From contig JBLDXI010000017.1 of assembly GCA_047495785.1 (NCBI GenBank), positions 1,302,001 to 1,366,000 of the forward strand: 64,000 nucleotides of DNA. The letters are read 5' to 3'. The notes under the pieces were generated by a model, which was not told the origin of the DNA, searched no databases, and was given only the letters and a program-made list of their open reading frames with translations. Source of the DNA: Lepidodermella squamata (Eukaryota > Animalia > Gastrotricha). Shown piece after piece: positions 236 through 54,723 of this stretch (its first letter is position 1; the number at the start of each line of letters is the position of its first letter). The position numbers and the translations under genes are program-made.

Positions 236-1303
236 ATGGCAGACATGGGTTCGAACAATCTGCCACATCAAAATGACGAGAAAGCCACACCGCCTAGCAC
301 TTCTGGATTGGTTTACGCTAATCTAACACCAATGCCGCAGGCAGGGACCAACTGCTACTTGCCACCACAAAACCAGCCACAGTTTGGCTACCCGAATCCA
401 GCGCAATATCAGGTATTTTTTTTCGCAGAGGCTTTGAGGTTGATTTCTTCATAGATTCTCTACGTAGTTCTTCCAACCGATTCCAGTTTATGAATTTCCC
501 CCAGGACAGCATATGATGATTCATCAGCACCCATTTGAAGGCTTTCCTATCGCCTTCCCGCAGCAGCCCATTATTCAATATCAACACCATGAGATCAGCC
601 ACACAAGATCTGCCTCAGACTTTACGCCTAATCAGCCGATATCGGTTGAACCTCAACTTGTTGGTACAGCATCAGATGCGAAAACGCGATCGCTACCTAG
701 TACACGCAGACCACGGCGAATCTCAGAATCACATCAGGTTTTTATTTAATTTTGTTTTGGTATAACATTTTTATTTAAATTATTAATTTCAGAGCGCTTG
801 CAAAAATCTATTAACTCGATTAAGAAATCGCGATGCAGCTCGGCGATGCCGAGAGCGTAAAATGACGAAGATAAATGTTCTTCAGGAGGTAAGATTTTAT
901 TAGTTTCCAACATCCAACACGGCGAAATTCATCATTATTTTTTTTGTAGGAGGTCAAAAAGTTGGAAGATGAGCAAAAATCGCTGAATGATATTATAAAT
1001 AATTATGTTCAACTTCCAGCTGAAATTCTAAAGCTGATTCAGTCGCCATCTCACGAGTGCTGTCTTCGGAATGAGCGGCAAAAAATCGTCGAACGACCCA
1101 AGTCTCTTACGCGACCTTCCGAGGAACCGATGGAAACCCTAACAGCAAGAATTGATAGCATGATGGAAACGCCACAGGAAAGTGGTGAGCTCAAGTCGTT
1201 TTCAGACGACGTTCAGCATTTGAGTTTCATGCTTTCAGGTGATTCCCTTCGAACGCCCGTCTCTGATGTGCCACATTTACCATTTGGGGCGTTCAAAAAA
1301 TGA
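236..1303 (+). CDS. bZIP transcription factor, Fos/ATF3-like (cluster copy 1); exons 236-412, 468-737, 793-888, 950-1303
   Basis: GT-AG phase-0 splicing gives ...TRLRNRDAARRCRERKMTKINVLQE|EVKKLEDEQKSLNDIINNY. This has the canonical N-x7-R-x9-L basic region plus zipper, and the intron sits at the c-Fos-type position after the first zipper Leu. The N-terminus is P/Q-rich. Confidence 0.88.
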
Positions 1304-2539
1304 CCTAGCTAGTTCTAAAGTTTAAAATTATTTATGAATAAAATGTGATAATATTATAAAGCTTTATCATTATGAATTTAGGAAGTGTTTTACCCCATGC
1401 ATATCTGGTTTAGTTCTTAAGGGTCTATTTGTATGGCCTTTTAAATTTTGGAATGGGTAACCGGAATATGAGTTCAAATAATAATAGACCTTTTGAATGC
1501 TCATAAATTAGCCAACAGTGCTAACAATTTCGGGGAGATGAGTAGCCAAAATTTAAAGGTGTGTTGGGGATGGCTAGATAAACTCTTATACGGACTTTTC
1601 CCATTTCCCATTCTTTGCCAATTTTTCCAATATGTTAAGACTAACATTACATTCGAGAGGGGGCATGGAACGTTCGCGATAGAGGTCTTGTTGGAAGCAT
1701 GTTATGATGGTGATTCATTTTAACCATCATAAAAATTGGCAGCGTTCGAGCACAGGTTCGCTCTTATAAATGACACCTGAATAGAACAGCTAGATAGCCA
1801 GCCAGGTGTGGGGTTTTTTGTATATGAATGACGACATTTTGATGCATAATAACGGGGAACAGCGGTTTGCCACTTTAACGCAGGTGTGGAAAACGGGCTG
1901 AATTGTTCAAGCGCATCTTGGCAACCATACCTACTATTCCTATGAATAAGAACTATCTGCGTCTTAGATTTCTATACTTTTTCTCCTACGATAAGCATAT
2001 ACGATAGCAATCTTTTCCTATACTATAACCCTCTGGCTGGCTTAGGTCTTACCTAGCTTACGTAGGTCTTTTGCATTGGCCGCTGTTTTGTTTGGGTTTA
2101 TTTAAGCAACTTTTCCTTTCGGGAAAAGAATCGAACATTTTCCCTGAGGGTTTAATCAGAATTTATTTTGGAGGAACCAATTATCAAACTTGGAACTTGT
2201 GTCTCGAATCATTAAAACTTAATAAGCTTTAGTTTTTTGGTGATCACGCCTTGTCATCAAAGTGATGATACAAAAATCTATAGCTATGCTATTTTTTTTA
2301 AATATTTATCACTTAAAATCATAGAATCCCCGATTTTTATTTTTTTATTATTAGTTTTAATTTATTATTAGCGAATTAACTTATCAAAATGTGGCTCCGT
2401 TACCAGTCAATTTTGGTTCTTCTGGAAGTAATATAGAAACTGCAAAGTAATTTAGGTAAAACCATCGCCCTTTCAATGTCCACTTACTCGAATCATAATG
2501 ATTCTCTAAAATTGGGCTATTTCCATTTTAATATTCTGA

Positions 2540-4235
2540 CTGCCATGATATGATGAAAATAACTGTTCCACTATACTTATATTGATGCTGTTTTATAGAG
2601 GCAATGCATTCAACGTCACGGCATTCCCCAATGCTTCGCAGCATTAGCTGCGGCAGCTACTTCACTGACGACTTCGAAGATGGGACATCTATGTTTTCGA
2701 TTTTGGACCCGTCTGTTGATCACTCAGCTCAATCGTTCTTGGTGGCCAATGCTGATCTTACCACTCCAACCTGGGAAGGCGACGGAAATAATCTCGAATC
2801 AACACATTTTCCGTTTGATCAAGATTTGATTGATAAATTTAATAAAATTCCTGACCCGAATTCGTCTAATGATCAGCCCATGGACCAAGCCACAACGTCC
2901 CGTCCTGCGAACCCGTGTGAAGATGTAAGCACATTGAAAATAAAAACTCTGTAATCAGTACCTGTTTTTGTGTTAGACAACGCTGGTCGTAAACAAGAAA
3001 GATGGAAGGAAGAGGGATAGAGCTGAAACGAAAAAAAGCGACAACAATAAAGCGGCGAAAAAATATCGCGAAAAAAAGAAGAAAGAGTGTGACGATCTGA
3101 TTGCGGTATAATTCTTTTTCCAATGTTATCAAGGCCATATTGATTGACGGCTTTCAATTTTTCAGATGTTGAACATTGTAACCGGAGAGGTCGAGCATCT
3201 CGAACGGATCCACATCCGATACAGCAAGCTGATAGCTCAGCTGTTCGAATTAAGTCAGGCTTCCAATTCGCGCCCTGCGCCAGCTGAGGAAATCGGGCAA
3301 ATTTACCAAGCAACTGGCCCGCAATTAACAAGATGGAGTTATAACGGATAAAATGCATCGAAAATACATGCCGAAATTCAGTATATCAAGTCATTCACAG
3401 CAATCTTCCACCACTAAAGCTGTAAATCTTTCGAGAAAAGGCAAACAATTTGGCGAGGAAGCAAATTTATTCTATGCTCGTAGAGTAGTTTTATAATTAT
3501 CATAACCGTAGCGGAGGGTAACTTTGGGCACTTTGGCTTTGCAGTAATAGCTGTGTAACGCCGAACAGGGTTGGTTGCATAACATTTCCCGCCTCTTTAG
3601 CTTGTGATTGGAACAATTTGCTTTGGCGTGGATATCCTTTAGCACTGCTCTCCCAGTTATCGAACAAAGAAAACTCAAGATCCGACGGTTGATTTTTTCA
3701 GGGTATTCGCCTGATGTTAAAAGGCGAAAATTAGGTAATTTTGGACTGTAAACAGGTGCGGCTGTGGGAAAATGTATTTTTTCTCCATTTAAAAAAAAAC
3801 AGATGAATCACAATTGGTTCATAAATTTTTTTCGAAATTTGACCAAGGGTCGATGAAACTGAAAACGTGCGCAAATTCAAAATTACCAGCCAATATGCAA
3901 ACAATATTTTCGATCCCCAAAAATCAGATAAATTTCGTAAAATCACCAAAATTAATGCAGATACATTCGGATTCACCTTACACACCTATTTCTTGTGTGT
4001 CTTCTATGTCATAAATTTCTGAATTAAGACAGATTTATATTAATTCTCAAAAAGCATGGTTCTGTCCAAATTTACCCTCCGCTACGGTATCCCTGCATTT
4101 CCTTCATTTGTCATCTATATGGAGGCCTGTGAATAATATTCAGCTTTTCTTCAATAAAAACAGAGATTTACGAACATCTTAACTCAATGCAAACAGACTG
4201 CGCGTTATTTTTATCTCAGGTTGGACGAGATTAAA
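2540..4235 (+). repeat. Segmental tandem duplication, copy A (copy B at ~5480-7020)
   Basis: Coding, intronic and ~0.8 kb of downstream non-coding sequence align by eye, e.g. ttctatgctcgta.agtagtttt...gcggagggtaacttt at 3470 and 6380, and gcgttatttttatct.agg at ~4202 and ~6987. Confidence 0.85.
2604..3351 (+). CDS. Divergent bZIP transcription factor (cluster copy 2); exons ~2604-2925, 2977-3105, 3166-3351
   Basis: Spliced product ...KKSDNNKAAKKYREKKKKECDDLIA|MLNIVTGEVEHLERIHIRYSKLIAQL, with N-x7-R-x9-L spacing. The start is uncertain: there is a splice acceptor at 2598 and an ATG at 2631 that is conserved with copy 3. Confidence 0.8.
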
Positions 4236-5479
4236 GTTCACTCTCAAAAAAGTCTCGTTATAGCCCTATACAAAAAGAATAAAGACGCGGGAGGAATTTT
4301 TAGGAGGGGAGCATCCTTAGAGGTCTTAAATTCGAAAATTTAAAATCATCAAGAAAAAACTGAGTATAAGAACATCTTGAAATCGTAGAATCGTCCTTCT
4401 TCAAGTGAGCATACTTTTTGAGATTTTGCTGGAAAATACAGAAACTTCGCCAAAGCCAACTTTTCACTTGTTAACGGTGATACGTGGGCTGGAAATTGAG
4501 GATGTTGATTCATTCGAACTCACGTGAAAACTGCCAACGTTCGAGCACGAAATTTCACGTGTAAAGGTTGAACACCTAACACACCGCCTACAGACCACAG
4601 AGAAAGCCATCGTGCTTTTCCATTGTATAAGCAGAAGACGGTACGAAATGAATTTAGAAATGACGGCATTTTTATGAATTAGTTTTTCCCGCCGCAGCGG
4701 GCACACGAGGTGTGAAAAAACGGGCTATATTTTTAAGCGAATATCTTGGCCACTAAACTAGTCATAAATTGATATATATGCCTTTTGGAGTATTAAGAAA
4801 TGTTTCTAAAAAAGTTGTTCTCTTATGGAAAGCCTACTGCAAAACTCTTCGGCTATCTTCAAATTATTTCAGCTAGTTAGCTTGTACCCTAGGTCTTTCG
4901 TTTTGCGGTCTATCGTTCCACAGGCCTTTTTGATTATATAACAGGAACTACATTTTTTGATATATTTTGAACTGATCAGTTCAAAATTTAGCGCGCGCGG
5001 GAAATTCTACGTCTATTATTTCGTAGCGATAATAATTTGGGGCAATATTTTCTTGACCTTGTCAAATATGAAATATGTTTCATCCAGAACAAAAAATTGT
5101 CCTAAAAGTAAACGCATCTCGAATTTTTAGGGCGAGATAGCTATATCCATAGCTAAAATCGAAATTTTTAGTGATTTAATAATTCTGCAAAGAATTCCTT
5201 TAGTTCGTCTGTAGATATTCTAAAACAAGTCCACATGTGCCCTACGACGTTCTCCCAAAATGTGTACAGCTTGGAATGCCGCATCGATAGCCCCGTTCTA
5301 CCACCCTAATAAATAGCCTGGACAATGCCTTAAGAGATTATGGATGGCAATTTTAACCCCAGAGACCTTTGAAATTTTAGAGACCTTAGAGCCTTCTTCA
5401 ACACTTTTCCCTCCTCTTTGAAGTAAATTACCACGAATCCTAATACTCAATATTGGACTGTTTCATCATACAATTCCAG

Positions 5480-7020
5480 TTACGGAGATTTTATGAAATT
5501 TACTGTTATACTTTATTTTGCTGTTCTATTATAGAGGCCGAGTATTCAAAGTTACGGCATTACCCAATGCCGCGCAGCTTTAGCTGTGGCAGCTGTCTCA
5601 TGGACGACATCGAAGATGCAATATCTTTGTCTTCGATATTGGGAATAAAGGACCCGGACCCGTACGCTGATCACTCAGTTCAATCGTTGGTGTCGAATGC
5701 TGAACTCTTCACTCCAACCTCGTCAGATGATGCAAATCACCCCAAATCAACACATTTTTCGTTTGATCAAGTTTCGATTGATAAATTGAATGAAATTCCT
5801 GATCTGAATTCGTCGAATGATCTGCCCATGGACCAAGCCACTACGCCGCGTCCTTCGAGCCCGTGTGAAGAAGTAAGCAAGTATAGCAAAGAATTTATAC
5901 ACCAGTATCCATTTTCTTGGTAGACAACGCTGGTCGTAATCAAGAAGGATGGCAGGAAAAGGGATAAAGCTGGAACTAAAAGAAGCGACAACAATAAAGC
6001 GGCGAAAAGATATCGCGACAAAAAGAAGAAGGAACATGACGATCTTATTGCGGTATAATTCTTAATCCAATGATGTTATATCGGGGCGCTTGATAGACGG
6101 CTTTCAATTTTTCAGATATTGGACATTGCAACCAGAGAGGTTAATCAACTCGAATCGATCCACATTCGATACAGCAAGCTGGTGGCTCAGCTGCACGAAT
6201 TTAAAATCACACCCCGGCCAGCTGTGGAAATCGGGCAAATTTACCAAGCTGCCGGTCCGCAATTTGCAAGATGGAGTTATTCCGGATAAAATGCATAGAA
6301 AAATACCATGAATTTCAATGTATAATTTGCAGCAATTTCCGGCTCTAAATTGAACATCTTCTGAGAAAAGGCAAATTCATTCTATGCTCGTAAAGTAGTT
6401 TTAATTATCATTACCATAGCGGAGGGTAACTTTGAACACTGGCTTAATCCTTAAAAATGAAAACTTATTTTTGCTGGACATTCGCCTGAATTTCAGGTGA
6501 GATTCGGCTAATTTTGGACTATTTATGAATATTTATATTTCTAAATTTTTTGATAAAAACAGATGCAACATCTTCAGTTTTTTTAATTTGACCCAAGAGT
6601 CGATAAAAAATGATAACGCACAATGTCATTGCGTGCGCAAATGAGCGTTCAAAATTACCCGCTATAATTGTCCAAATATATGCAAAAATGTTTTCCATCG
6701 CAAAAGAAATCAGGTGAATTTCAAAAAAATCACCTAAATTTGCAGATCAATCCGGAATCACCTCACACTCCTATTTCTGAAATATCATGAATTTCCGAAC
6801 TAAGACTGAATTTTTGCTGAAAAACATGGTTTCGTCCAGAATTACCTTCCGCTACAATATCCGTGCATTTCCACCATTTCTAATCAAGGTTGAAGTTTGC
6901 GTGTGTTGAGGTCTATGATTAATATTCAATTTCGTTAATAAAAACGGGAGTTTTCAGACTATTTTTTTACTCAATGTACAAACAGTGCGTTATTTTTATC
7001 TGAGGCTTTCGGCGAGATTA
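5480..7020 (+). repeat. Segmental tandem duplication, copy B
   Basis: See copy A; boundaries are approximate. Confidence 0.85.
5567..6289 (+). CDS. Divergent bZIP transcription factor (cluster copy 3, recent duplicate of copy 2); exons ~5567-5872, 5924-6052, 6116-6289
   Basis: ...KRSDNNKAAKRYRDKKKKEHDDLIA|ILDIATREVNQLESIHIRYSKLVAQL...RWSYSG*. Exon structure matches copy 2. The 5' end is uncertain. Confidence 0.8.
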
Positions 7021-7204
7021 TAGTTGCGTTGGCACGCTTTACGTGACGTTGAAACAAAACGATGCTACGCGAAGCCGTAAAGAAATAGAAATGACTCAAA
7101 TGCTATTAGCTAACGTTGCGGTGCCTGACGCATTTTACGTGTGGGTTTATATTAGGTTCGAACGGGATCCTCAAAATAGTATAGTTACTTTCACTGCTAT
7201 TTCA

Positions 7205-7828
7205 ATGATTCGCCGCTCTAAGTCCGATCAGGTTTGATTATATTGCTGAATTGTTCCGGGCTCTTACTTTACTTTAAAGACTCATAACCATCCCGCTGAA
7301 ATGGATTTCCACCGGGAATTGACGAAGAAAGAACGCAATAGATTGGCTGCTGCAAAAACTCGCGAAACTCGTGGTAAAAGAGTAGCTTTCCTGTCAAATG
7401 TAAAGGCCGTAATTTCGTAATATTTAAAAATAATTTTCAAGAAATAAATTCAGCTTGTTTACAACATTCAAGAGGAGGTTCAAGAGCTGGAGAGCCTCAA
7501 AATCCGCTTTGAATATTTATTAGAAAATATGCAGGATCTATTGGCTTCCGTTGAGATGAATCGGCCATTTAGCTTACCGCTAACTCCAACCGCTGAATAT
7601 CAATTTACCAACAATTTCTTCTGCTCGAACATGGACGAACTTGAAACGCCCAAAGTCGAAGAGCGAGACTATGGTTTTGATGAGACGGCAGTTTGCTCTC
7701 GATATTCTTTATATCGGCCCGAAAACACCCCGATTTATGCTCGGCTGTCTTGGTCAGCTTCTGATTTCTTCACCGAACAATCTTTGGATAACAATAAGAA
7801 GGAAGATTTCAAGCTGCTTCAGCTGTGA
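7205..7828 (+). CDS. Short bZIP transcription factor, Fos/ATF3/BATF-like (cluster copy 4); exons 7205-7231, 7280-7399, 7454-7828
   Basis: MIRRSKSDQ|THNHPAEMDFHRELTKKERNRLAAAKTRETRGKRVAFLSN|LVYNIQEEVQELESLKIRFEYLL. The ERNRLAAAK.R motif is present. Confidence 0.85.
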
Positions 7829-8032
7829 CTTTGTTTGGCACCATCTATCGTGTCCCTTTATGACTCGGCCGTTTTTACAATAAAAAAGTCGATGATTAAT
7901 GTCCTGGTGTTAATCTCTGAGACGTATCATTATGTCAGGTCACAGCGCTGTGACCTAGAGTATAGCAGGGTGTCCTTGAAATCAGGGGCCAGTTTCTAAG
8001 GTCCCCAAGGGCCAGTTATTTTAGCATCGAAA

Positions 8033-8677
8033 ATGGACATGGACTTTTCTATAAGATCATGGGACTTGTCTATTTTCGCAGCTAAATCTCGAAAAATCAG
8101 TATGACGAAGGTCGCAGATGACCGTTTCGTCAACTTTGCTCGAAAAGCTGAACCTTTTTACGCCTGGCTGCGGCAAGCTAACGATTACTTTTCGATCGAT
8201 TTAATTCCAAGTCAAGACCTAGGTGATATTATTGAATCTCATGGCAAATTCAAAGCGTCAATGGTCCAAGCTCAGAAGGATCTGGTAAAACTAGGCGAAA
8301 TCGATGTGGATTGCCCGAATCCTTACACCTGGATACGCATGGCTGATTTGAGAAACGAATGGGAAAAATTGCAACGGGCCGTTTCCCGCCGGGATGAAGA
8401 AATCGCTCGAAAATTCAGCGAGCAAAAATGGACGTCAATCTACTTTTCACCTGTTCCTAAAACGTCGTTCAAACAGCTGAAAAGCTACCTGCGTTCGGTT
8501 AATTATCGATTCCGTGGCGAAATTGTTTATGACAAGAATGCGAATTACGCCATCATCGACTTTGAACAACCGGCAGCAGCGGAAATTCTACGCCAGCCAA
8601 CTTTTGCGTTCGATAAATGGGGAATCACTTCTCGCGTCCATGAAATCAATCGATATGATGACTATCAGCAGTCTTAA
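8033..8677 (+). CDS. Intronless chimeric protein: one alpha-spectrin-type repeat plus a C-terminal RRM-like domain
   Basis: FVNFARKAEPFYAWL...H.KFKAS...AQKD...NPYTWIRMADL.NEWEKLQRAVSRRDEEI resembles the NPYTW-containing penultimate repeat of alpha-spectrin (recalled from memory). It is followed by RNP2-like (SIYFSPV) and RNP1-like (NYAIIDF) motifs. The true start may be the ATG at 8102. AATAAA at 8717. Confidence 0.7.
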   Translation: MDMDFSIRSWDLSIFAAKSRKISMTKVADDRFVNFARKAEPFYAWLRQANDYFSIDLIPSQDLGDIIESHGKFKASMVQAQKDLVKLGEIDVDCPNPYTWIRMADLRNEWEKLQRAVSRRDEEIARKFSEQKWTSIYFSPVPKTSFKQLKSYLRSVNYRFRGEIVYDKNANYAIIDFEQPAAAEILRQPTFAFDKWGITSRVHEINRYDDYQQS

Positions 8678-9406
8678 ATAAATCCAAATTACTGTAAAAC
8701 TATTGGTATTCAGCTTAATAAAGGCAGCACATTTACTTCATTTCATTTTGAGTGCAGCAATATTTTATTTGACAAGAGAAAATAGGACAGTTTTCATTTA
8801 GATTACGTGCGCGACTTGAAAACTAACTTGAAAGTTGCGTTATACTAATAATGCCTGTTCGAAAATAGCTCAAGAAGTCGGTCAGCCGCAGCAAAATGGC
8901 TGATGTGTGCGGCTTCAAGGTTTTTTTATGAGTAATGTTTCATAAATTTGCTCTCATCATAAGTAGAGAGGTATTTGCAAAAGATGAATCACGTTGACTC
9001 AAGTTTTATTTAGAACACAGAATGGATTACATTTAAACCTCAAGAACGGCTCTACAACGTTTGAGCCAACTCATTTCAGTCAGGCTTAGCCCGAATAAGC
9101 AGCTAGAATTACAATTTATTTCCAAAAATTGTATAAAATTGACATTATTTGCCAACGACTATTCAGCCAAATTCAATTGCCACCATCAATTGGAGACAAA
9201 ATCAGAGGCATTGGGCAATTTTAAAAATTGTATTGCCGCAAGTCAGCTTCAAAAAGTTCGATTTTTTAAAAAAATTTTCAACTACAAGTAGGACAAGTCT
9301 ACGATTTTTTCTATTTCAATCGACAAACTCTAGATCTCTTAGAAAATCATAATTTCCTTGTCTGTAAAAAACAATTCGCTTTCATTCACTTATGACAGAA
9401 AAAGCC

Positions 9407-9790
9407 GTAGTGCGACATTTCAGCCGACGACAACTCAGCCAAATCGCAGCTAAAATTAATTAATTTCATACAAATGGGCAATTAATTGCGTAATATCAAG
9501 TTCGAAAGGGCGCCGGGGAACAATAAGACCCAGCACCCAGCAGACTGGACCTCATCGTCCGAGACTACGACTTCGCCCGCGTCCTGATCTCGGTCTTCCT
9601 TGGCTTCCTGAACCGCGCCATCTTTGACACATGTAACATCCAACTTTGTTTGGCCCAGTCTTTGGCTCTGGATCATCCACAGCACCCTCTCGATCCATTT
9701 CATTGATATTACGCTATCAATTGCCCATTTTTATGACATAAATTAATTTTTTCGCTTGGCTGAGCTGAGTTGGCTGAAATGTCGTAGAAC
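9407..9790. mobile_element. Non-autonomous TIR element (~90 bp imperfect inverted arms) enclosing a 203 bp GC-rich insert
   Basis: 9413-9499 (cgacatttcagcc...aaatgggcaattaattgcgtaatatcaa) is the reverse complement of 9703-9784 (ttgatattacgctatcaattgcccattt...ggctgaaatgtcg). No TSD identified. Confidence 0.7.
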
Positions 9791-10047
9791 TAAAAAAAGC
9801 TAGAAAGCTTGAAATCATCGAAATTTGATCTCTTCTGGGATAATTCAGTTCATGCAATTCAGGCCAATTTTTGGAAACCTGATGTGATCAGATTTCTATG
9901 GTTAACTATCAATGCATGAAGCCCTGATAATGAAATTGTGGTTGTCACGCTGAGTTGTCATCGGCTAGTTCCATTTTCTTTGCTTTTAGATGTTTATCGT
10001 GATTCGAGCAAAAAGCCGTTAGAAATTATGACAATCAAGTAACAACC

Positions 10048-10797
10048 ATGTCTGTTGGTGAACATTCTTTGGCAAGCGATATCAGTTTCAACGCATCAAC
10101 CCCATCGCCAGCGGCATGCAAGCGAAGAGCAACGCCGGGTCGAAGGAGAAAACGTGATACGGAACAACCTTTTTTGGTTCGAAACTTATATATTTCCAGG
10201 TTATGATGATTTCAAGTATAATGATTGCTTGCTCAGGTGGATGAAAAATTGGAGAAAAAGCGCGAAAAAGACAGGCTGGCAGCGAAGAAAAGCCGACTCG
10301 GCCGTGACAAACGGATTCAATTTTTGGAAAATGTGAGGACTGACTTTTTGAAAAAAAAATAATATTGATATAAAATGCAAAATAAAATAATTATGATTTT
10401 AGGAAACGAATTTTAGGCACAACTTTTTGTCCGTGCTGCGAATTAAATTTTTTGTCATCTCTTCCCCTTCCAGAAAATAATGTCGCTAAGATACGAAGTC
10501 GCCCAGCTAACGGCCCTTGTCCAGCGATACGAGATATTCAACTCTACTATTTTACCGGAATTGTCGAGGCAGGTAATGCTGAAAAATGAAATTGAGGCCG
10601 AGCCGAGCCGTATGACAGAGGCATTGACTGGCACAACGAGAACTTGGCAATCCGAAATTTCTATCGAGGAACTTCAACGGGTTTATTTGCCTGCCGGTGT
10701 CAGCTCTTCGGATGATTTTTCATTCACTGAAATCGGGCCTTCCTTGCCATCGCCTGGGACAACTGCATCTTTGCAAAAGTTACAACTGAGGCGATAA
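10048..10797 (+). CDS. Divergent bZIP factor (cluster copy 5) with Asp at the invariant Asn; exons 10048-10176, 10237-10332, 10474-10797
   Basis: ...VDEKLEKKREKDRLAAKKSRLGRDKRIQFLEN|KIMSLRYEVAQLTALVQRYEIF. The phase-0 intron is at the same position as in the other copies. Confidence 0.8.
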
Positions 10798-11623: not shown

Positions 11624-13262
11624 CTAGAAGATAAGACGCTTGAGACCATACGGGCCCATTTCTTCGAACTGCCGGCGGGTGATCCATTTGCTGTGGAACG
11701 AAGACAGCGACGCCAGGATGGAGCCGCCGATCCAGACGGAATATTTCCGCTCGGCCGGGGCGACAAGTTTCGGCTTCATCGCAGCCGGGGTTAGATTGAT
11801 AATTTCCGTCTCCAACCTATCCGCAAGACCCTCGAGCACGGTCGTACCGCCAGACAACACAATGTTGTTGTACAACTTCTGGCGAATGTCAAACTGGCAA
11901 CGTTGGATCGAATCGACGACCAATTTGTGAATTCCAGGCGCGTCCATGCCGACTAGGGATGGCTTGAATAGAGCCTCCGGGCACATGAAACGCTCCGGGC
12001 CGATGGTCACCTCAGAGCCATCCGGCATGTTTGTGTACACCTTGTTGTAATCTTCCATCAGCCTCGCGCATTGCGACGCGTTAGCTTCTTCCAGTTCTTG
12101 CTTGGCTAGGTCGTAGTTTTGGTGGACAAAGCACAGCTTCTCCTTAATGTCCTTGGCAATTTCGAAGCCAGCGCTAGATTGCAGGGACAGGCCGACAGAT
12201 TCCATCAGCAGCGTTACGAGGTATTCGGTCAAATCGCGACCGGCAAGGTCGAGGCGCTTGATCGCGCTCGGAATGGCGTAGCCCTCGAAAATAGGGACAA
12301 CGTGCGTGACACCGTCGCCTGAGTCGATGACAACACCCGTCGTGTTGCCCGAGGCGTAGAGCGACAGCACGGCTTGGATGGACACGTACATGGCTGGCAC
12401 GTCGAAGGCTTCGAACATTGTTTTGAACATATTGACTCGGTGGTTGGCCGGATTTTGAGGCGCCTCTGTAATAGAAGAAAAAGGTCATGTTCAAAAATTG
12501 AAATAAAAACTCCTCCTTAAAATTTCATTTTTTCGCTCAAAAATCTAACGATTAAATTTATCAATTTCAAAATAATGATAATAAATTGAGCGTAAAAACG
12601 AATCAGGATTCCCGGTTCAACCCTCAACTTGAACTCCAAATTTTAACATTTTTTCAAAGTTGTTGCCATCAATATTTGAAATTGGACGTTTCAACCATAG
12701 AGAATGAAGTGATTCTCTATCATTTTATTATCTATGGCTTCAACAATTGAAGAGATGATTTTATATTCCAGATTTTTCTATCGATTCGCCAAATTCTCGG
12801 ATGAAAGCTGAAATCTCTAAGATTCGAGTGACCTGTAAGCTGAAAGCTGAAAGCTGAATTTTAGTCTCTCAATGCACTAGAATGTGTAAGTGAAGGTTCA
12901 AATTGCGTGTTTTATAGCAACTAACCTGTTAGAAGAACGGGATGTTCAGCCGGGTTGACGCCGAGCTCTCGCCAGAAGGTGTGATGCCAAATGCGTTCCA
13001 TGTCATCCCAATTCGTAACAATGCCGTGCTGCATCGGGTAGTTGAGCGTCAACAGGCCACGCATTTCCTGCGCATCATCGCCTACGTACGCTTCACGCGA
13101 CGTGATGCCGACGAGCACGTCGCGCTGGCGAAGCGGGTCCGGCCGGCCGACAACAGCCGGGAAAATGGCGATGGGCACGTCATCGGTCGCAAAACCGGCC
13201 TTGACGGAACCTGTTCCGTTGTCGATAACTATAGGCTTGCCAAAATCCTCAAAAGCCGCCAT
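11624..13262 (-). CDS. Divergent actin / actin-like protein (~392 aa); exons 13262-12926, 12465-11624
   Basis: Motifs [36 protein letters not shown]|[45 protein letters not shown] phase-1 GT-AG intron gives an intact frame (1179 nt). Confidence 0.93.
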
Positions 13263-43200: not shown

Positions 43201-46200
43201 AGTACTTCGCCGATCTTCAGATGCAGACTGAACACGAACTGTTGCAAAATGGCCTCGATCTTCAAATGGTTTACATCAAATGGGTTAGACATTAACAGGC
43301 CGTGTCGACGGCGTGGCGGTTACCGCCCCTGATACCTATGAATTACTCTCGGCCGAAAATACGGTGTTTTCGATGGATGATCAACTATGATCCTGACGAT
43401 TTTACAGTTTGCTGTCATTTCGGCGATTCTTGTTTTTTCCCTGCCCGTCGTGATTGTCATTTGTCTGAAGGACATCGGAAGGACATCGGAAGGACATCGG
43501 ATGAAGATCGACATGTTTATAAATTGAATATATAAGTTTATATATAAATTTCTAAAACAAATGCTGCGTTCTTCGCTTGGGTAGCTATACCTTTAAATTC
43601 TATAAATTCTAGAGTATTCTATGAACGGTAAGTTCCTTTTGTTGAATCTACTCAAGATCTTGGTGGGAAATTAAACTGGTAAGACTCACTTTGCTCATAT
43701 CATTAACAATTGTAACAGGCTATTATATGCTATAAACAGTGCTCGGACTGAGGCTAAAAGTATTCGAGTCATACATTTTACCGAATTTCGATCATTATTG
43801 TATTGTATCTTAAATCTATGAAAATGACGTTTACCAACCTGTTGAGCGGCTTGAAGAATGAGCGCATGAGCCGGCGTGACAGCGGCCGGTAATCGGCGCC
43901 AGTCTCGCATCAAAAACTGGAACGCAGCCTCGACGCATCGCTGAACAACTGACGGGGTAGCATAGGCAGGCGTGATCGCCCCAGCTGAGGATGTAGTACT
44001 CGAAGCCGCTGCTACAATCTCATCCACACTCTGCAACGACGACTGCGAGCCAGAAAGTGACAGGCAAGTATAGCCCTGGTACAGCGACGCCTTCCACTGC
44101 CACTCAGTCGGGCATGTGTTGATATCAATCCGCGTCAAATGTTCCCGCATTGACTGCCAATCAGGCAGCCGCCAGACAACATCGGCGAGCAACAGTGAAT
44201 TCGAGTCGCTGTCCGAATTTGAAAAATCTTTCAAAACCTGCCAGTGAGACAGCTGCCGGCAACAGTCGATCCACAAATCTTCCATCAACTGGCATTCGAC
44301 GACCTCATGCGAATTCATCGGGGTTTGCGCGTGTTTGTCCACCGCCTTCCGCATCGCCTGTTCGAACGTAATTCGACCCTGCTCGTACAGCCCGTACTGG
44401 TAATAAGCAACAGCATTAGCCGCCTCGGGGGTTGAGCTTTTCCCGCCACGTTGCCACAAAGCACATTTCAGGTCAATCTCCCCCAAATGGTCGTATAGCT
44501 CTGATAGGCAATTCACAGTCTCGTGGACTGAAATCGAAGCCAACGGTGACGGCCCGGTGGGAATTTGTTGAGTAGGATCGGCCGGATTGGTATCAGCCAG
44601 CGCTTGTTGTTGCTTCGCCTTTCGGCCAGTTGCCGACAGTAAAGCGGACAAACTTTCAACATTCGACTCGTGGAAAACGAGATAACGCTCAAGAGCTAGA
44701 CACGCTTCATACCACGCCCGATGCGATTTTCCGACATATTTCACGCAGAACGGTCTCAAAGCCATTGGCGGCGGTCCGGCGAGGAGACATGCCTCGAAAA
44801 TAACTTTCAACGCACTTGTTGGTAGATCGCGCTGAATTAAATGCGCCCCAGAGCATAGGAATGGCACCATTTCCGACGTCAAACCAGTTTGCTGCTTCCG
44901 GCTCAAGATCCGCCAAACTTTCGTGAATAAATCCAGCCAAACACTCGATGCGAATTGCGTATCAGCGTGGACTAGATGGTTGAGTGAGGTCAAGAATTTC
45001 CCGACATTGATCTGTTGCGATGGAGACTCGCTTTTCAATGACATGATTTGCTGTGCGGTGAAGTATGCCCCTAATGTCGAATGGGCTTTAGACAACACCG
45101 TCTCTGCTTGAGCCATTTCTAGCAATAAGCTGGATGATGATGTTGTTGAAGTCGTAGAGTCGCGTTGAGGTGGCAAGTCGACTTCCATAGCACAGCTTGG
45201 TTCGGTTTTAACCGCCAATGATGGAATTGGCGGGGGAACTGCGGCCGATAGGCTCTGAGTAGCTGGCGGCGCACTTGTACTGGCAACAGTTGTTGGACAT
45301 GGCATCAAAATATTGCTGGTTGATGGAGCCGCTGTGGTAATTTGAGGTGGAGCGGGTGGTGGAGGCGGTGGAAGTAACGACGGAACAGTCGGCCCAGTCA
45401 AATTTGTGACGACAAGAGAGTTTTTGTCAGCCACTGTAAAAGAAATTATCACAAATTTCATAGCTTCGTATTTTCAAATTAAATCGAAATTTCGAAAAAA
45501 TATTAAAAAAGAATATTTCTGATTTTAAAATTTCAAAACTTCGAATTGTTCGCACTCATCGCGTTTCTTAAATTTATTATTTTTTATTATTTATCATTTT
45601 CATTTCATTTTATTATTATTATCTTTATTATTATCTTTATTTATATTATCCACTTAAAACCACAGCGCAACACAAAACACCAATTTGCAGCAGGATAAAA
45701 TTGCAACACATAACTTATTTCTGTAACTTGTAAGTTCGATATAACAAGAAGATAGAGGATAGGGGCAGTTTTTTACGCTCAATCCGAATATGAAAACCGA
45801 AAGGGACGATTTCCAATTTTTACCCGGGTAGTACCCGGTTTTTACCCGGTTTACCCGGTACCAACGTCCCTGACATTCAAACAATTACCACGGTCGTATT
45901 CCGCGCCCGCGATAACATCTATTGGTATGCCTGAATTTTACTTGTTTCACTAATGCCAAAAACAAGGTCGTGTGTTGCAAAAATGTGTGCTGCAAAATAT
46001 TAAATTCTGTGTTGCACTTCGGTTATTTCTGTTACGCTGTGGTGGTGAGCCTATATTATCTTTATTTTATTAAATTGTTGATGATTATACATATAATTTC
46101 AAAATTTAAATTTAAATTTCGACATTTTCGGGAAATGAAAGGTAATGTAAATTTACCAGCTAAGACAAGCTCCACGCACTGTTTGACCCAGAAATGCTGG

Positions 46201-49200
46201 CCAATATTTTCCCAATTTTGACTCGACGTGATGTAGAGCATGCGTTCAACCAGCGATCTCGGAACATTCGTATCCAGCGATTCGAAAAACTTGGCCCTAA
46301 CCTCCGGATTCCGCGATTTCAGCCCACACAGGAAGGCCGGCTCAAGTTTCGCCGCAACCTCAACACCGCGATACAGATCGTCGCGATACACTTGAATAAT
46401 CACGCTGTAAAACGTCGAGCAAACTTCTTCGTCGTTCGAAAATCGCCGCTCGACATTGTTCATCAGCTTGATCAATAATGCAGTCCTTTCGCGAGGCGAT
46501 GGAACAGCACTAGCGGCAACGGCGGCTAGGGCCGATGAAGCAGATGTTCCGCTGGATGAAGCTGCCGTCGCCCGAACATTCATCCACTCCTCCACGATTT
46601 TTATTATCATTTTCATGACTTTTGGATCGGAGGTTTTTTCGATCAAGACACCGAGAATACTCGCGACGAATTCTTTTTGCGTATCCGCCGACATAGCTGA
46701 GGTCCGGCCCTTGAGTAGCTCGAGGCCAATCAAAATCAAATCAGCAGTTCCCTGGCTTGGCGAGTCAGACTGAGTGTGATCTTTCGTCAATCTCAGCAAA
46801 ACATGAACAAGACCGGGTAAAATTTTGTCGATGTAAGTCGGCGAGTGCATTCGAGCTGTTCGAACCAGGAGCAAAGTAGGGGTCAGTTGCAACAGGGTTA
46901 AAGGCTGAGCTTTCTCCAGCTTAATCAACCCATCATGAATCACCTTGGCACACGCTGCGTAAAGATGTTCCAACTCATCCCTCGGCGAATACTGCGACTG
47001 CATATTACCCGAACCGCCTGTGATGTTGACCATAGGTGGCGGTAGGTCGTAGGGTGGCCAGAATGACATGACCCGGGCTAGAACCAGGTGAACCAGCTTG
47101 ACAATGCGCAGATTTGTGCATCGAACGCAAACAGCTAGACCCATTTGAATTTGCTTCAAGCAATTCAAAACTTGTTCTCGGTTGTTCATGATTGAAATTA
47201 GGAACGCTAAAGCTTCGAGGGACGCGCAGACTGTGCTCAGGGTGTTCGCCTGGGACGATTGCTGTTGCTGTTGTGCTGGGATAGCCTGACCGGCGGCGTT
47301 TTGTTGCTGTTGTTGAGCTGAGGAAGCGCTTTCGCTCTGCAGTAAAATTCGATCCATCCATTGCAGTTGAATTTCGGGTTGAGGCCACATCTCCGGGCCT
47401 AGGACGGATTTCAATAGGCAAAGAGCTCGTTTACCCGACGCATCGAGCTGGGTAACAGCGCTATTAGCTGCCGTATTTGGAGACGTAGCTTGGTTAGCCG
47501 ACGATGAGGAAGACGTGTCAACGATTGAAGCGACTCTAATCAGAGAATTGACGATTGTATCGCATTGCGAGCGTTCCATGGGTCGTTTCGTGACAGAGGA
47601 AGATGCGCCTTAAAATACCAAAAATTATCGTATAAAAATCATGATTATTTTACAATTGTTTCATACCTGAAATGTGGCGACGTCGAAGTTCGGTTGGAAT
47701 CGATGAATCGCCGACTGAGGAGGTTGCGCCTTGGTTCAACTGGGCCGATGCAGTCGGGGTAGTTGCCCCTGCCTCAGATCCGGTAGCTTGCGGCCCTCCG
47801 ACCGTCACCATCGGTTGCGTATTCATCTCCTCCGTCAATCTCGTCTGCTCCCAGCGAATAATCACCTCGCACAAATCGATGATCAATTTCTTGTTATCAG
47901 CTGTTAGCGAGGACGATTGGTTCAAAATCCGATTCATGCCCTGGCAACACAGCTCCAAAATCTGGAATCGGACTGGGTAGTAAAGCTTCTGATGGCGGAT
48001 AACTAGGGCCAGAACATGGGCACATGCGATCGGCTGTTGCCCGTCATCGAGCAGAATTCGCTTCGTCAAATGACCGAGAAGTGTTGTAGCGTCATCACTA
48101 GCGATTCGAGCCGGCAAAGCCGGCATTAAAGTGTGAAGAGCCGAATGAACAATCGCCTTCACGTTCGCGTCAGATGTATGCGCTTTAAGCAGGCTGTTCA
48201 AAACCTGCGCGGGGAAACATAAAAATAATTAAAAAAATGCCAAAAATTAAGGAGGAATTTTCAATGATTAAAATCAATCAGTGCAAGGATGGTTTAATCA
48301 CAAATGCGAGGCAGGCCGGTTAGGGCCGTCTCTGCGAAGTCAGAATATAGCAATGATGCATGATAAAATCATGTATCCATCATTTTGATCTGAAAATTCA
48401 AGAAAAAACCGAATAAAAACCGACCTGAAGAACAATTTTCTTGTGAATAGCGAATTTCGCGATGATATGCGCCAGAAGAAGATGGCCGTAGTATTTCACC
48501 GATGGGTCGATGCAGTTTCGAGGCAGCAAACTGGGCCATGCGAAAGTCATCAAACGCCTCAGTTTGGTGCCTTGTTTCTTCGATACCGAATCGTGAATGT
48601 GACAAGGAGCACAATCGACCAGTAAACACGCCAATTGGAGCAAAGCAACCATCATTGCATCGGACAAATTTTTCAACGCATCAGGATCAATAATCTGAAA
48701 TTTTTAATTAAAAAATCGAAAAGAATTAATCGCAAAAACTACGTTATTGAGGAAGACGCTGATGATGTTGTCATCACTATCAATATCTGGCTGCGGCTTG
48801 CTGCCAATAATCGCATCAGTATTTCCGGCTTCGAAGGCATTCGCAACCGCCGGAATTATGATATTGATCACAATTCGCGATTTGAATTCTTGGCTCAGAT
48901 CATCCGAGGTGAATAGACTTGCGAATCGGAAGAACGCGCAACGCACCCAGGAAACTGGGTACGATTTGACGACAACTTCATCCACAAATTTGCGCACGTT
49001 TTGAAATTGATAGACCAGCCGAGTGTCGAAAGCTGATAGCAACTGGAAAATCAAATCGACCGATGCTTGGTGATTCGCCTCGTTTGTCACGTCCATAGAA
49101 GATGCGCGATGCACGAGTAATTTCGCGACGAAATACGGAATTCGCCAGTACGCATAGTCGTTGTTTTGATTCGAAAAAATATTCGTGAATCGCGCGACAA

Positions 49201-52200
49201 ATTCCGGATCAGTCCACATATGCAGCAACGCCTCGGCTAGCCGGTTATCAGTCGCCATGTCAGAGGGTGAAAATTTGCGTAAAACGCAAAAGCACCGCAA
49301 CGAAACGCAAGTTTGAGCGGCTGATCGTTGAAAATTCAGCATTTGGTACAGCGTTTCGCGGTGATTTGCCAGCAATTCGTTGCGCAAGTCAACGCCTTTT
49401 TGCTCGTTTTTCAACATGTGGATAAACATTTCCATCGTATGAACGTCATTCACGTAGCGGTCGGATAAAATCAATTTAATAGCCGCGTTTGGGTTGCATT
49501 TCAAACATGATAGTAACGGCTCAGCAAAAGGACTGCCATTTTGCATTAACATAGCAGTTTCTTTCACTACAACCGCATTCAACAGCCTGGCTAGTAATGA
49601 CTGGGTCAAGCTTTCAGTTGGGAAGTATTGAAATGTCTCTATCAGCGCGATCGAAAGACGGACTTCACTCGAAAACAGGTGACCAGCGATTGACTGAACG
49701 CTTTTAGTCGAATTAACCGACCGCTCGAGCCAAGTTTCAAGGTGGGTCGGCAGCAGTTCATCCAACGCTTGCTCACTGACAAGATTTGGGAATAACTGAA
49801 TCAAAAACTGGCATCGGCGAATTACGTCAACTGTTAAGGAGGCGCAATCTGACAATTGCCCGGTTATGAACGGCTTCACGACTTGGTCAAAAATCGTGCT
49901 GAGCGACAAAATTTGGCGATTTTTCTGGTCTTGATTGAGTAGTAACTTCGCGGCTTCAAAAGCTGTTGAGGTCAACTCGTTAACCGGTGAAACGAGCGGG
50001 GCAGGCGGCAAACCAGCGACTTGACTGCTCGGTAAAATATCGAGCAGACACTTGCAAATCGCAGCGAAAATCCGCTCAAGTAACGCCGTATTGCTGATGT
50101 AGTGGCAAGTCGTCAGAAATTGAAGGGCAGTGCATTTCAGCCCAGATAGTGAAGTCACGTTTTTATAACAAGTTTGTTGGCTCAAAACGTCCCGTTCGTT
50201 CTCTTCACACAGCGTGATCAGCGGGGTTAAAAAAGCCTGGCAAGTTTCGTCGTTAGAAAAGAAATATTGATGAGGATTTCGCATGTTCTTCGCGAGGAAT
50301 AGGCAGCCATTCAATAAACCGACTTGGCTAGCGTAAGGCAGCAGTTTTAACGGACGATCTCGAGCCTGGGCCGTCGCCTCCTTAATCGGCTGATCGAATT
50401 TTTCAAGCAACTCGCCAACATTTTTGAAGTTGGATTTCAGAACGATTTTGTCTAAAACTTGGCCCGTTGTAGTTCTGACGTGTTCACAACTCGAGAAAAG
50501 CGCTGGAATCAACCGAGCAGCGATTATTTTATCCAGAATATCGGTTATTGGATTGGTCAAAAGTTCGAATAGTTTGTTAACGCCGTCAAATGCAAGATCG
50601 TTGCAGCAAAACGAAACCTCTTGATCGATATCGGACAACATGTATAGCAACGCCTCGGAAAAGGAATGCGCATTTCTGGTCAAAAATGCTGAGCTGTTCT
50701 GAGAATTTGCGCACAAATGAAGGAGTAAATTCAACGCCCGGCAACCGCCCGCCTTCGCATACCACGGCCTCGAAAAACACATTCGCACAACCTGATCGGT
50801 GAAATACTGCAGCGAAACAAGTTGCCAGAAGAAAACCTCGTCGCCCAGCAGCAAAATTAAGGTGGAATAAATGCGTTCAATCACGTCGAGAGTTAAATTC
50901 ACAACATCTTTGCGCTCGTTTGCGAGTAGGGATAGAATTGCATCGAACAAAATCCAACCATCCAACTGGTTATTTTGGCTGAGGGTGGGGAAAATTCCGC
51001 TTTCTTGAGCCAACATGATCAGGCAAAATCGATCAACGACAAAAGCGGTTAGTTCGGTAGCGGATTTATTGAGATCTGGTATCAGCATTGCGAAGAAATG
51101 GGCTTCAATCAATTGACGCAAGGCAGCTCTACCCGAAGATTCAGGCAGCAGCGATTTCCCTAAATCGCTCAGAGAAAAATCTTGTTTCGGCTTCGAATTT
51201 TGCATAACGTTACGGATTTCGTTGATATTCGCTATACCCCCGCCGGTATTCAGCAGAGTCAAAATCACCGAATTAACGACTTCAAAGGCCTGTTTGCCTA
51301 AAAAGGTGGTTTTCGTGTCTTTGACTGGACCTGCCGTGCCAACGTTATCAGACAATACCGAGCTGACTTGAGACAGGGATGAACCAGCTTGTTGCTCTAA
51401 CAACGCGACTTGCTGTAGGGTTTTCAACGCAACGCTAACTGCCTCGTCTAATTTCAATTCAACAACACCCCTTTGCGGAAATTCAAGCTTCAACGTGACA
51501 GTTGAAGATGTATTGGATGAAGCGCTGAGGAGGAAGTTTTCCGAAATTCGATCACGACCAGTTCCGCCGAGTTTACCGAAAATTCTCAAAGCGGTTTGAG
51601 CAACATCAGGTGGGCCATTCAAACAACAACACAGGGCCGACATCAAATCTCGATGTACCGGCTGGATGTAGTTGTAAAAATAATCCGGTTGAACGTTATC
51701 AACGCACAATTCCAGAGTTCTCAAACCCTGTTGGACCAAAGATGGTGAGCCACTTAGTGCGGAAACTAGAGGCCCCATCAATAGGTGGAGGAATGGCAAT
51801 AAGGTGGACAGACGAACCGGTACAGTGAGGCATAGCTCGACGAATAAATCATGAATTTCCGAACGATGGCAGTCGTAATTAAGCCGGCTAAGCGTTTTTA
51901 ACAGACTTGGCAATAACTGGTAGAATTCTTTATAAAGCCGTTCCGTCGTCCCGCCGCCGATTGCTCGGAACAGGCAACGCAGTAACATCAGATAGTTGCT
52001 GGGATGAGCGGCAGATTTCGACAGTTGAACGCATCGGCTGACTAGAGAAACGAGATGAGGCTCGAGGACCGCCTCATTTATCACCGGGTACAGCGAAATC
52101 GAGCCGAAAATGGACCGGAAAAGCTTGAGATAAATCGGCGGCCGAATCGGGTCGGTCGAGCCTAAAACCGGGAGTCTTGCCAGCAAATACTGCAGTAAAA

Positions 52201-54723
52201 TTGTCGCGAAAGTCGACGATTGCAGCTGATTTGCCAAAAACGAATTGATAATGACTTGGAGCAATGGGTTTCCGATAAATCGCTCGATTAACGTGTCAAT
52301 ACATTGGACAAAGATTTGGCGGAAAGTTTCAGGATTCATGTGCAGATTGAAAATCCCGGCGAAATGCTCTAAAACCTCCTTTTCCTCTTTATTCTTCAAC
52401 TGAGGGGAAATCGCATTTGGCGACATTTTCGTGTAAGTCATCGCCCCGGGTCGGCCGGACGAGCTGATCAAGTAGATATCAAGTACTGCAGTTGCGTGTT
52501 TCGCCAACTGGACGTATACTTGAATTTCCCGAGGCTGGCATAGCTTCTCCATAGTAATAGTCGAATCTCGATTAGCGGGTATGGTTTGCTGCAGGCCCAA
52601 AGTCACCTGTTTAGTCGCAGCTACAAGAGTCTTAACCAAATGACGGCATTCAACCAGAGGACAAGCGACACTTTGGGCGGAAGAACCGGGTTGAACCGGC
52701 TGGTAAGACCCTGATCCGCAAAAACCAGCCTGGCTTCGTCGAGATGGGCTCAATAACTGATGTTGCTGAGGTTGGCCAGTCGCTGATTGATCTGAAGCCG
52801 GTAGATTCGATTGCTGCTCCTGTTTGCCAGATTCAGTAACGGCTGATACAAAAGCTTGGGGCGACAGCATTTCCTCGATCAGTGGCTGACTCTGAACTTG
52901 TTTCGCCAGATCCGTAGCCGGTGGTTGTTGCTGAGTCGATGTGCATTTAGCCAGTAACATTGGAATGTGATATTTCGCCAAGGTTTTGAACTTCAAACAG
53001 TACATTTCGAGAATTCGGAGGAGTAAATCACGACCATTATTGTTTTGCGGATCTTCCTCGGTTCGTTTTCGAATGCAATCAACCAAATTCATCATCAATC
53101 GACAACAGATTTGCTGAATACCCCACTGAAACGTTTCGGCATGGACGTGCCTCGCGTAGAAATTGACAGCCAATGCCAAGGTTTCAAAGGGTAGGTGATT
53201 TCTGATTCGATGGACTAAATCAGCCAAGGTAGTGTAAGCCAAGGGCTGAAGAGAGTCTTGAACGCTGTAACCATTAGACAGGAGCAACTTTTCATCGAAT
53301 AGCTTCTCCACATGAGGGATGAACCTTGTCATCAATTCCGAGTTCAAAATGTGACGAACAGCAATTAGCAGCTCGCGTCGCAAATGATAAGCTTCAGGTG
53401 GACAAGATGCAAGTAACTGAAGCAGACCAGTAGCCAACGACTGTCCCTCTTTATCAATCTATGAAAACAATTCAATTGAGAATCGGTATGAAAACTAAAA
53501 AAGAAAGGCTTACCATCACAACGAGATCTTTGTAAACCTTAGCGGCCACAAAAGCAATGAATGAAGCAACTTTGATTTGAACAGTGATGAAATCGACGTA
53601 AATCTCTTTAAAAGTTTCCCTCGCTCCGATTCCATCTCCACCCGAGACAGAGGGGGTAGCGGGGTTGGCTGAGCCTTGAGGAGAAGGAGCAGCTAATGCT
53701 TTGGCTGACGTTGACGGCATTGGAGGCTGCAGCATTAAGCAGCTAATTGTCGTCACTGTAAATTCGCCTATTTCCGTTTGAAACAGCTTTCCGTACAATT
53801 GGTACCAAAGGACAACCATAAGTGGAACTTCAGCCAACACTTTTAGCGACATGGTCGATCGGGGCAGCAAGACATAGTTTAAAGCGGGCTGACTCTTGTC
53901 CTCTGGTCGAGTGTCAGTAATTGTCAATTGGGTGAAGGTATTCTGAAGCAGCTGTTCGACATTGATTCTCTGACACATTTGGTCGATACTAGCCATCTTA
54001 CGCAGGTCCTTAACAATCAAAGGCGATTGCTGCTCAAAGATTTTGGGCATGTAAGATTGCAAGTGAGAATATAGCTGTTTGACAGAAATAAGAAAGCTGT
54101 GAATTCCGGCATTAATTGACGGCCGATAATAGCGATGCAGATCCATAATGATTTTCATGCAAACCAAAGCATTTTCCTCGTTTTCGATCTCGAATAAGCG
54201 AAACATTTGAGTGAGGAGAGTTGAAACATAATGCTCTTTTATTATCTCATTGGTAGGAAGCCTGAGAATGATTTCAAGAATTTGCTTTCTCAGTTGCTGG
54301 AAAGAAAATATCATTAGGGACATCTCCATACTAACGATGAAAGTACTCACATGAAGTGGATGCTCGGAGATGAAATGCGGTTCTGTATCTCGAAGAACTC
54401 GCATAAAAACTGTCAGCATGTCATTGATGAAATCATTCAGTTTGGGATGGCAAGCGATGGTAGTCTGCAAATGTTCGGCGATTTCCTGGGCTGCTTTTAG
54501 CCTCTTCTCCAAATCTGAAATGTAGACAGGATGAATTTGATTTAAGTCAGGATTAAACATGCCATATAAAAAACATACTTCCGAGAGCAAGGGGCTCGCC
54601 AATGAGTTGAACATAACTGACGAGAGTCGATAAATGACCGGGAGCCTGCGATTGAGCCGATGGAGTAAATGGAGAAATAAGAGGGCTCGGGCTCGGATTA
54701 CTTCCAGACGGAGTACTAGTCAT
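37260..54723 (-). CDS. TRRAP: Transformation/transcription domain-associated protein (TRRAP/Tra1/Nipped-A), multi-exon
   Basis: Diagnostic segments: ENEENALVCMKIIMDLHR, SLKVLAEVPLMVV, LRRELLIAVRHI, DLFVELCLTVPVRLSTLLPFL, QGLRTLELCVDN, KLRRLMTFAW, FAT region (WRRLP, Q|VIELNEA, KTWKNRLP), pseudo-PI3K domain (PFRMTP), FATC (DNLCRVDPTTLPWI*). Confidence 0.96.
40645..40992 (+). mobile_element. Possible LTR-retrotransposon gag fragment in the TRRAP intron
   Basis: GC-rich ORF ...PESFISWFTGVVKTYKAAGG...DDEIACLFIRALCDERYRDF resembles copia-type gag (ES...Y...G..DD.....L..L...Y). No LTRs seen. Confidence 0.4.
43100..43296 (+). mobile_element. Decayed non-LTR (CR1/L2/Jockey-type) reverse transcriptase fragment
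   Basis: SEVPQGSVLGPLLFAI (RT motif B'), then frameshifted ILFAD(T) and KWFTSNGLDIN. Confidence 0.85.
45660..46042. mobile_element. Decayed MITE-like inverted-repeat element in a TRRAP intron
   Basis: ccacagcgcaaca...gcagca...ttgcaacaca on the left is mirrored by tgtgttgcaa...tgctgc...tgttacgctgtgg on the right. Internal (tttacccgg)n repeats. Confidence 0.5.

Follow-up and report, generated by a model that had tools for sequence, protein, structure and literature searches.

A probable tandem cluster of five divergent, intron-containing bZIP genes in the gastrotrich Lepidodermella squamata

A 64,000-nucleotide stretch of the genome of the gastrotrich Lepidodermella squamata (contig JBLDXI010000017.1, positions 1,302,001 to 1,366,000; hereafter the window, whose own positions are used throughout) carries near its start five co-oriented genes, g1 to g5 (copies 1 to 5), which quite probably form a tandem cluster of intron-containing bZIP transcription-factor genes. 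In this cluster g1 would encode an AP-1-type protein, and g2/g3, g4 and g5 would make up a fast-evolving, lineage-restricted subfamily that arose by local duplication. The window is eukaryotic, with very short introns and a G+C content of about 0.42; the published L. squamata genome has 43%, and its transcriptome comes from adults only. The gene models were obtained by enumerating canonical GT-AG sites, those of g1, g4 and g5 being the best canonical-splice solutions, and the basic-region motifs were located by a six-frame scan. As a first-pass annotation of this DNA had claimed, the five genes lie on the + strand and each has a short basic-region exon: the motifs are where it had put them, and the models are canonical.

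236-10797, + strand: bZIP array, five co-oriented genes
174-180, + strand: TATA box upstream of g1
236-1303, + strand: g1 (copy 1), 298 amino acids; exons 236-412, 468-737, 793-888 and 950-1303
826-852, + strand: motif NRDAARRCR of g1 (six-frame scan)
1337: AATAAA downstream of g1
2599-4117, + strand: g2 (copy 2), 211 amino acids; exons 2599-2924 (ATG at 2604), 2977-3105 and 3166-3351 (to the stop)
3043-3069, + strand: motif NNKAAKKYR of g2 (six-frame scan)
5535-6925, + strand: g3 (copy 3), 202 amino acids; exons 5535-5872 (first ATG at 5567), 5924-6052 and 6116-6289 (to the stop)
5990-6016, + strand: motif NNKAAKRYR of g3 (six-frame scan)
7301-7828, + strand: g4 (copy 4), 157 amino acids; exons 7301-7399 (ATG plus 96 nucleotides) and 7454-7828
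7337-7363, + strand: motif NRLAAAKTR of g4 (six-frame scan)
10048-10797, + strand: g5 (copy 5), 182 amino acids; exons 10048-10176, 10237-10332 (96-nucleotide basic exon) and 10474-10797
10270-10296, + strand: motif DRLAAKKSR of g5 (six-frame scan)

In g1, exon 793-888 is the 96-nucleotide basic exon, and exon 950-1303 holds the zipper, the C-terminus and the stop codon. The basic exon measures 129 nucleotides in both g2 (NNKAAKKYR) and g3 (NNKAAKRYR), whose 3' untranslated regions reach to at least 4117 and to about 6925, respectively; g4 has no N-terminal domain and consists only of the bZIP domain and a tail. In the 400 nucleotides that precede each gene, no TATA box other than that at 174-180 was found. 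A profile scan of the 64-kb window, built from the five half domains, did not find a sixth copy.

On their profile matches we regard all five as bZIP domains, very divergent ones. Taken alone, the basic exons match Pfam bZIP_1 or bZIP_2 in five of five cases (E 8.6e-6 to 0.023), with consistent profile coordinates, and the five spliced domains that were compared (59-67 residues each) match Pfam bZIP with E values of 4.5e-11 to 2.6e-4. The Pfam bZIP models are independent of the array and match all five copies, and its pattern is not due to chance. The Pfam cut-offs are 27.6 bits for bZIP_1 and 22.3 bits for bZIP_2, and the spliced domains of g1 (bZIP_1, 43.1 bits), g3 (bZIP_2, 28.4 bits) and g5 (bZIP_2, 24.4 bits) lie above them. 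In all five copies, moreover, the first zipper Leu stands 18 residues past the basic-region Asn and is followed by hydrophobic a/d heptads, which is the spacing of a bZIP domain.

The position of the intron that separates basic region and zipper is common to the whole array. In every copy a phase-0 GT donor lies exactly two codons past the Leu at N+18, as the first-pass annotation had said and as all five models (two of them, g2 and g3, proven by RNA) have it, and in every copy the AG acceptor restores the heptad register; this intron measures 61 nucleotides in g1, 60 in g2, 63 in g3, 54 in g4 and 141 in g5. Counted from the basic-region Asn, the d positions of the zipper are N+18, N+25, N+32 and N+39, and their residues read L-L-L-Y in g1, L-V-L-Y in g2, L-A-L-Y in g3, L-I-L-F in g4 and L-L-L-Y in g5. 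The aromatic fourth d position reported earlier (Y, Y, Y, F, Y) is therefore present in all five copies, and the signature EV..L.....R(Y/F) ascribed to copies 2-5 was recovered in the spliced models as E28-V29-x2-L32-x5-R38-(Y/F)39, common to g2-g5. The zippers are short (4-5 heptads), and Pro terminates those of g1 (N+43) and g5 (N+48). The DNA-contact residues do vary among the copies, as the five motifs show: relative to N-x2-AA-x2-(C/S)-R there are single-residue exceptions, with Tyr (g2, g3) or Thr (g4) in place of Cys/Ser, and in g5 Asp replaces the invariant Asn.

Two public sequencing runs contain this stretch of DNA. One, X1, behaves as RNA; the other, X2, is DNA from a closely related genome. 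Contigs of both were placed on the interval 2500-8000, and g1 lies outside it. A 1432-nucleotide contig of X1 spans 2598-2924, 2977-3104 and 3165-4117, that is g2, with GT..AG joints; the junctions in X1 are 2924|2977 and 3105|3166 for g2, and 5872|5924 and 6052|6116 for g3 (the last read as 6051|6115, with the cut at +1). These joints prove the introns of g2 and g3, including the starts of the zipper exons that set the heptad register, so that the predicted splicing holds for this pair. Between the window and X2, the coding sequence of g2 carries one synonymous change and the 60-nucleotide intron 2 carries four changes; together with a ratio of nonsynonymous to synonymous divergence (dN/dS) of 0.60 between g2 and g3, this argues for constraint on the pair.

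The copies were compared with each other by the same program, and at the same database size, as in the searches of solved structures described below, and BLASTP agrees with the result. The pair g2-g3 scores 89 bits, g4-g5 31 bits (44% identity over 45 amino acids) and g2-g4 21 bits. The proteins of g2 and g3 are 66% identical, with a synonymous divergence (dS) of 0.29, and the two genes lie in a duplicated block of DNA (2547-4238 for g2, 5487-7025 for g3); judged by these similarities, g3 is a recent duplicate of g2, and the two are the youngest pair of the array. As g2/g3, g4 and g5 are mutual best matches, they form a private subfamily, and since the g4-g5, g2-g4 and g2-g3 scores exceed the matches to structures, copies 2-5 are closer to each other than to any solved bZIP. 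The lineage-specific expansion proposed in the first-pass annotation thus stands for copies 2-5, which owe their lineage-specific look to these mutual best matches and to the lack of detectable outside relatives; it does not stand for copy 1, whose similarity to any other copy (at most 11 bits) is not significant.

Contigs of X2 jump from 4030-4236 to 6826-7025, that is from the end of the g2 block to the end homologous to it in the g3 block, skipping about 2.79 kb. The jump carries 17-25 unlike letters between its ends, and other X2 contigs cover g3; its cause may be a haplotype that lacks the g2/g3 duplication, or else a hop of the assembly from one repeat to another. In the spacer of g2 and g3, X2 depth rises to about 2150 at 4340-4523, against about 77 nearby, and many loose ends of contigs from both runs fall at 4318-4478; the segment 4340-4523 is probably a dispersed repeat.

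Outside the array, an exhaustive profile search of 1.84 billion representative proteins found no true relative of the N-terminal exon of g2/g3; its sole match, the repetitive protein P0001, aligned in 6 stretches and was rejected as spurious. Word-index protein searches with the last exon of g4 and the first coding exon of g3 gave no match, not even to the organism's own proteins, and Atlas feature searches with the last exons of g2 and g4 gave no usable match. The databases seem to lack this organism's own proteins, so the absence of matches means little.

As to family, the reference was the set of all solved structures in the PDB, against which the half domains are too weak to classify and the spliced domains are informative. 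The best structures for g1 are JunD (26.1 bits, 6e-5), c-Jun (25.6 bits, 8.5e-5) and c-Fos (24.1 bits, 2.7e-4), with further matches to BACH1, CREB1 and GCN4. The first match of g4 is c-Jun (17 bits, E 0.06), with FosB at 0.29; that of g5 is also c-Jun (21 bits, E 0.003), with NFIL3 at 0.049; the spliced domain of g2 has no bZIP match among the solved structures. A profile of g2, g4 and g5 finds NFIL3 (4e-4) and c-Jun (5.5e-4), then JunD and ATF2, and lower down FosB (0.1), c-Fos (0.17), C/EBP-beta (0.7) and ATF4 (7.7). The label "Fos-like" given to the array in the first-pass annotation finds no support here as a family assignment: Jun and JunD score at least as high as Fos for g1, g4 and g5, g2 has no match, and the profile favours NFIL3 and c-Jun. 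By its scores g1 has a more canonical domain of AP-1 type, in which Fos and Jun are not separable. An ATF4-like reading of g2/g3, whose YR motif recalls the Tyr that in ATF4 precedes the invariant Arg (N--AA--YR), was rejected, since the profile gives ATF-4 (structure 1ci6) an E value of 7.7 and the g2 search does not find it.

The array resembles AP-1 (c-Jun/JunD, c-Fos/FosB), which provides the best structures for g1 and the first matches for g4 and g5, in having a basic region and then, at fixed spacing, a heptad Leu zipper. It differs from AP-1 in its low scores, which do not separate Jun from Fos, in zippers that are short and end in Pro (g1, g5), and in contact residues changed to Tyr, Thr or Asp; the fourth d of the c-Jun and NFIL3 zippers, too, is Leu, against Tyr/Phe in the array. 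NFIL3/E4BP4 has in common with the profile of g2, g4 and g5 the pattern NN-AAK--R-EK and the L-E-N zipper start, but an E value of 4e-4 is marginal and ties with c-Jun, the array shows nothing of the extended basic region of PAR proteins, and the bZIP of NFIL3 is not known to be interrupted by an intron. Independent diversification of bZIP genes across many lineages has been described in general terms (PMC4736632), and the array fits this general pattern, although it differs from other bZIP expansions in its tight tandem arrangement and in a conjoined transcript, treated below. As far as we could find, the literature holds no description of gastrotrich bZIP genes.

Several points weigh against the reading of the array as a working cluster with a lineage-restricted subfamily. 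The spliced domains of g2 (bZIP_1, 26.5 bits, E 7e-6) and g4 (bZIP_1, 21.5 bits, E 2.6e-4) span the full profile and remain under its cut-off. No RNA junction was seen for g1, g4 and g5, whose introns, foreseen in the first-pass annotation, are thus predicted ones: g1 is seen in RNA only as a 23-nucleotide fragment within the g2 contig, g4 only as low-depth contigs of X1 on its last exon, with no junction, and g5 was not seen in X1, the sole RNA run (less than 5% of its words are present). Either g4 or g5 could be silent or decaying. The ties of g1 to the array are its position, its exon structure and one Tyr only. "Lineage-restricted" should be taken to mean that nothing is detectable outside the array, for relatives in gastrotrichs or flatworms would go unseen. 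Dimerisation and DNA binding of the array proteins, finally, are predicted.

Two other explanations of the five genes deserve to be weighed here. The genes might be true divergent Fos-family paralogues, descended from a Fos/ATF3/BATF-type ancestor and retaining its diagnostic intron, and we consider this improbable. Intron position is the sole Fos/ATF3-type character that we find in the copies: exon 3 of human c-Fos ends at Ala167, two codons past Leu165, the first zipper Leu, which is just where the phase-0 intron of the array lies. An exon border likewise separates basic region and zipper in the wider Fos/ATF3/JDP2/BATF group, exon 3 of BATF being "the ZIP coding region" and exon 4 of JDP2 carrying most of the zipper; the literature yielded nothing usable on where introns lie across metazoan bZIP genes or on the exon borders of c-Fos. 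The same descent could be read into the Fos/ATF3-type AAAK of g4, the acidic g/e pairs, which recall Fos, the presence of c-Fos among the top matches of g1, and the g1 zipper start LQEEVKKLEDE, which resembles that of Fos. However, Fos is in no copy a better match than Jun, the profile puts NFIL3, c-Jun, JunD and ATF2 ahead of FosB and c-Fos, the NN-AAK--YR of g2/g3 looks closer to the PAR/NFIL3 or ATF4 signatures, and the upstream exon border lies 11 or 22 codons before the Asn, against 15 in c-Fos.

It is also rather unlikely, in our opinion, that only g1-g3 are working genes, with g4 and g5 mere relics that have no function, either as young pseudogenes or as duplicates that were never expressed. 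The trace RNA of g4 and the lack of RNA for g5 would fit such relics, and so would the score of g4 under the Pfam cut-off, the 5 nonsynonymous and 4 synonymous differences of g4 between the window and X2 (where its reading frame is open), and the loss of the invariant Asn in g5. Yet in both genes the open reading frames (ORFs) are complete and the splice sites canonical, both retain the heptad register as well as the E-V-L-R-Y/F signature, and they are still 44% identical to one another; the single transcriptome is, besides, from adults, and expression specific to a stage or to stress would escape it.

If the cluster of bZIP genes is what we think it is, the array proteins would bind DNA as dimers through their short zippers, and the changed contact residues (Cys/Ser to Tyr or Thr, and Asn to Asp in g5) would alter or weaken the recognition of half-sites. 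Like-charged g-e' pairs disfavour homodimers by the usual bZIP pairing rules. E28/E33 is such a pair in g2-g4, and these proteins would thus probably be heterodimer partners or modulators. Because g4 has no further domain beyond bZIP and tail, and g5 lacks the Asn, the two are candidate inhibitory partners. As for g2, at least some of it would be made from a transcript that reads through from g1 and is spliced at a site within the last exon of g1, and this brings us to the following feature.

1161-1184, + strand: part of the last exon of g1, joined in RNA to the first coding exon of g2 (X1 contig)

Upstream of 2598, the g2 contig carries 23 bases identical to 1161-1183, a 23-mer that is unique in the window. 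The join 1184|2599 has a strong internal donor, G|GTGAGC (at 1185), and the acceptor ttttatag|A. The frame continues across this join, giving an ORF of 472 codons that contains the two bZIP domains. This raises the possibility, to which we give little credence, that g1 and g2, perhaps with g3, are one transcription unit driven from the g1 TATA promoter, with a long isoform (1184 to 2599) coding for a 472-amino-acid double-bZIP protein, a chain that could either fold back on itself into a single-chain, intramolecular heterodimer or link two dimers. It would account for the fact that the only assembled g2 messenger RNA (mRNA) contig opens with sequence unique to the last exon of g1, for the strong donor and the in-frame junction, and for the way in which g2 and g3 both start at a conserved acceptor without a TATA box when g1 has one at 174; g3, furthermore, has lost the ATG next to its acceptor, and yet its frame is open from the acceptor on. 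Against it, all of this comes from 23 nucleotides of a single de Bruijn contig, a join has a 1 in 3 chance of being in frame, and the implied intron of 1414 nucleotides exceeds the local norm about 25-fold. The g2 acceptor, 5 nucleotides before its ATG, may normally receive a spliced leader, and the cis join may then be a minor by-product of read-through. We know of no natural double-bZIP protein.

Taken further, the same observations could describe a self-contained dimerisation system, in which the aromatic fourth d position is a private pairing code among the five proteins and the 1184|2599 mRNA gives a self-pairing, single-chain protein with the two different bZIP domains of g1 and g2, that is, a fixed heterodimer; we hold this to be very improbable. 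The first-pass annotation put forward a closed network of combinatorial dimers that would have a zipper code of its own; this is purely conjectural.

As it stands, the array looks like an ordinary lineage-specific expansion within a family that is very well known; its few unusual details are the aromatic fourth d position, the Asp for Asn in g5 and the conjoined transcript. It contributes several orphan bZIP factors for Gastrotricha, a phylum with almost no transcription-factor annotation, and supplies concrete gene models, supported by RNA for g2 and g3, of a kind that short basic-region exons conceal from ORF-based views. Should a private pairing or binding code, or the two-bZIP protein, prove true, the array would be a compact natural case of bZIP network diversification after tandem duplication.

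The neighbourhood of the array includes two other ORFs.

8033-8677, + strand: intronless ORF with a spectrin repeat and a C-terminal region, outside the bZIP family (Pfam Spectrin, E 2e-6)
11624-12430, - strand: actin-like ORF fragment, 268 amino acids, recognised by eye, just downstream of the array

The spectrin-repeat ORF (214 amino acids) sits between g4 and g5 on the same strand as the array; an exact-sequence look-up with it matched no public assembly, the collections apparently lacking this genome. Further along the window, the nearest Atlas clusters to the ORF at 46062-47579 (- strand) are Tra1/TRRAP HEAT-ring proteins (score 0.97); a large TRRAP-like gene probably comprises both this ORF and the long ORFs at 43695-54614.

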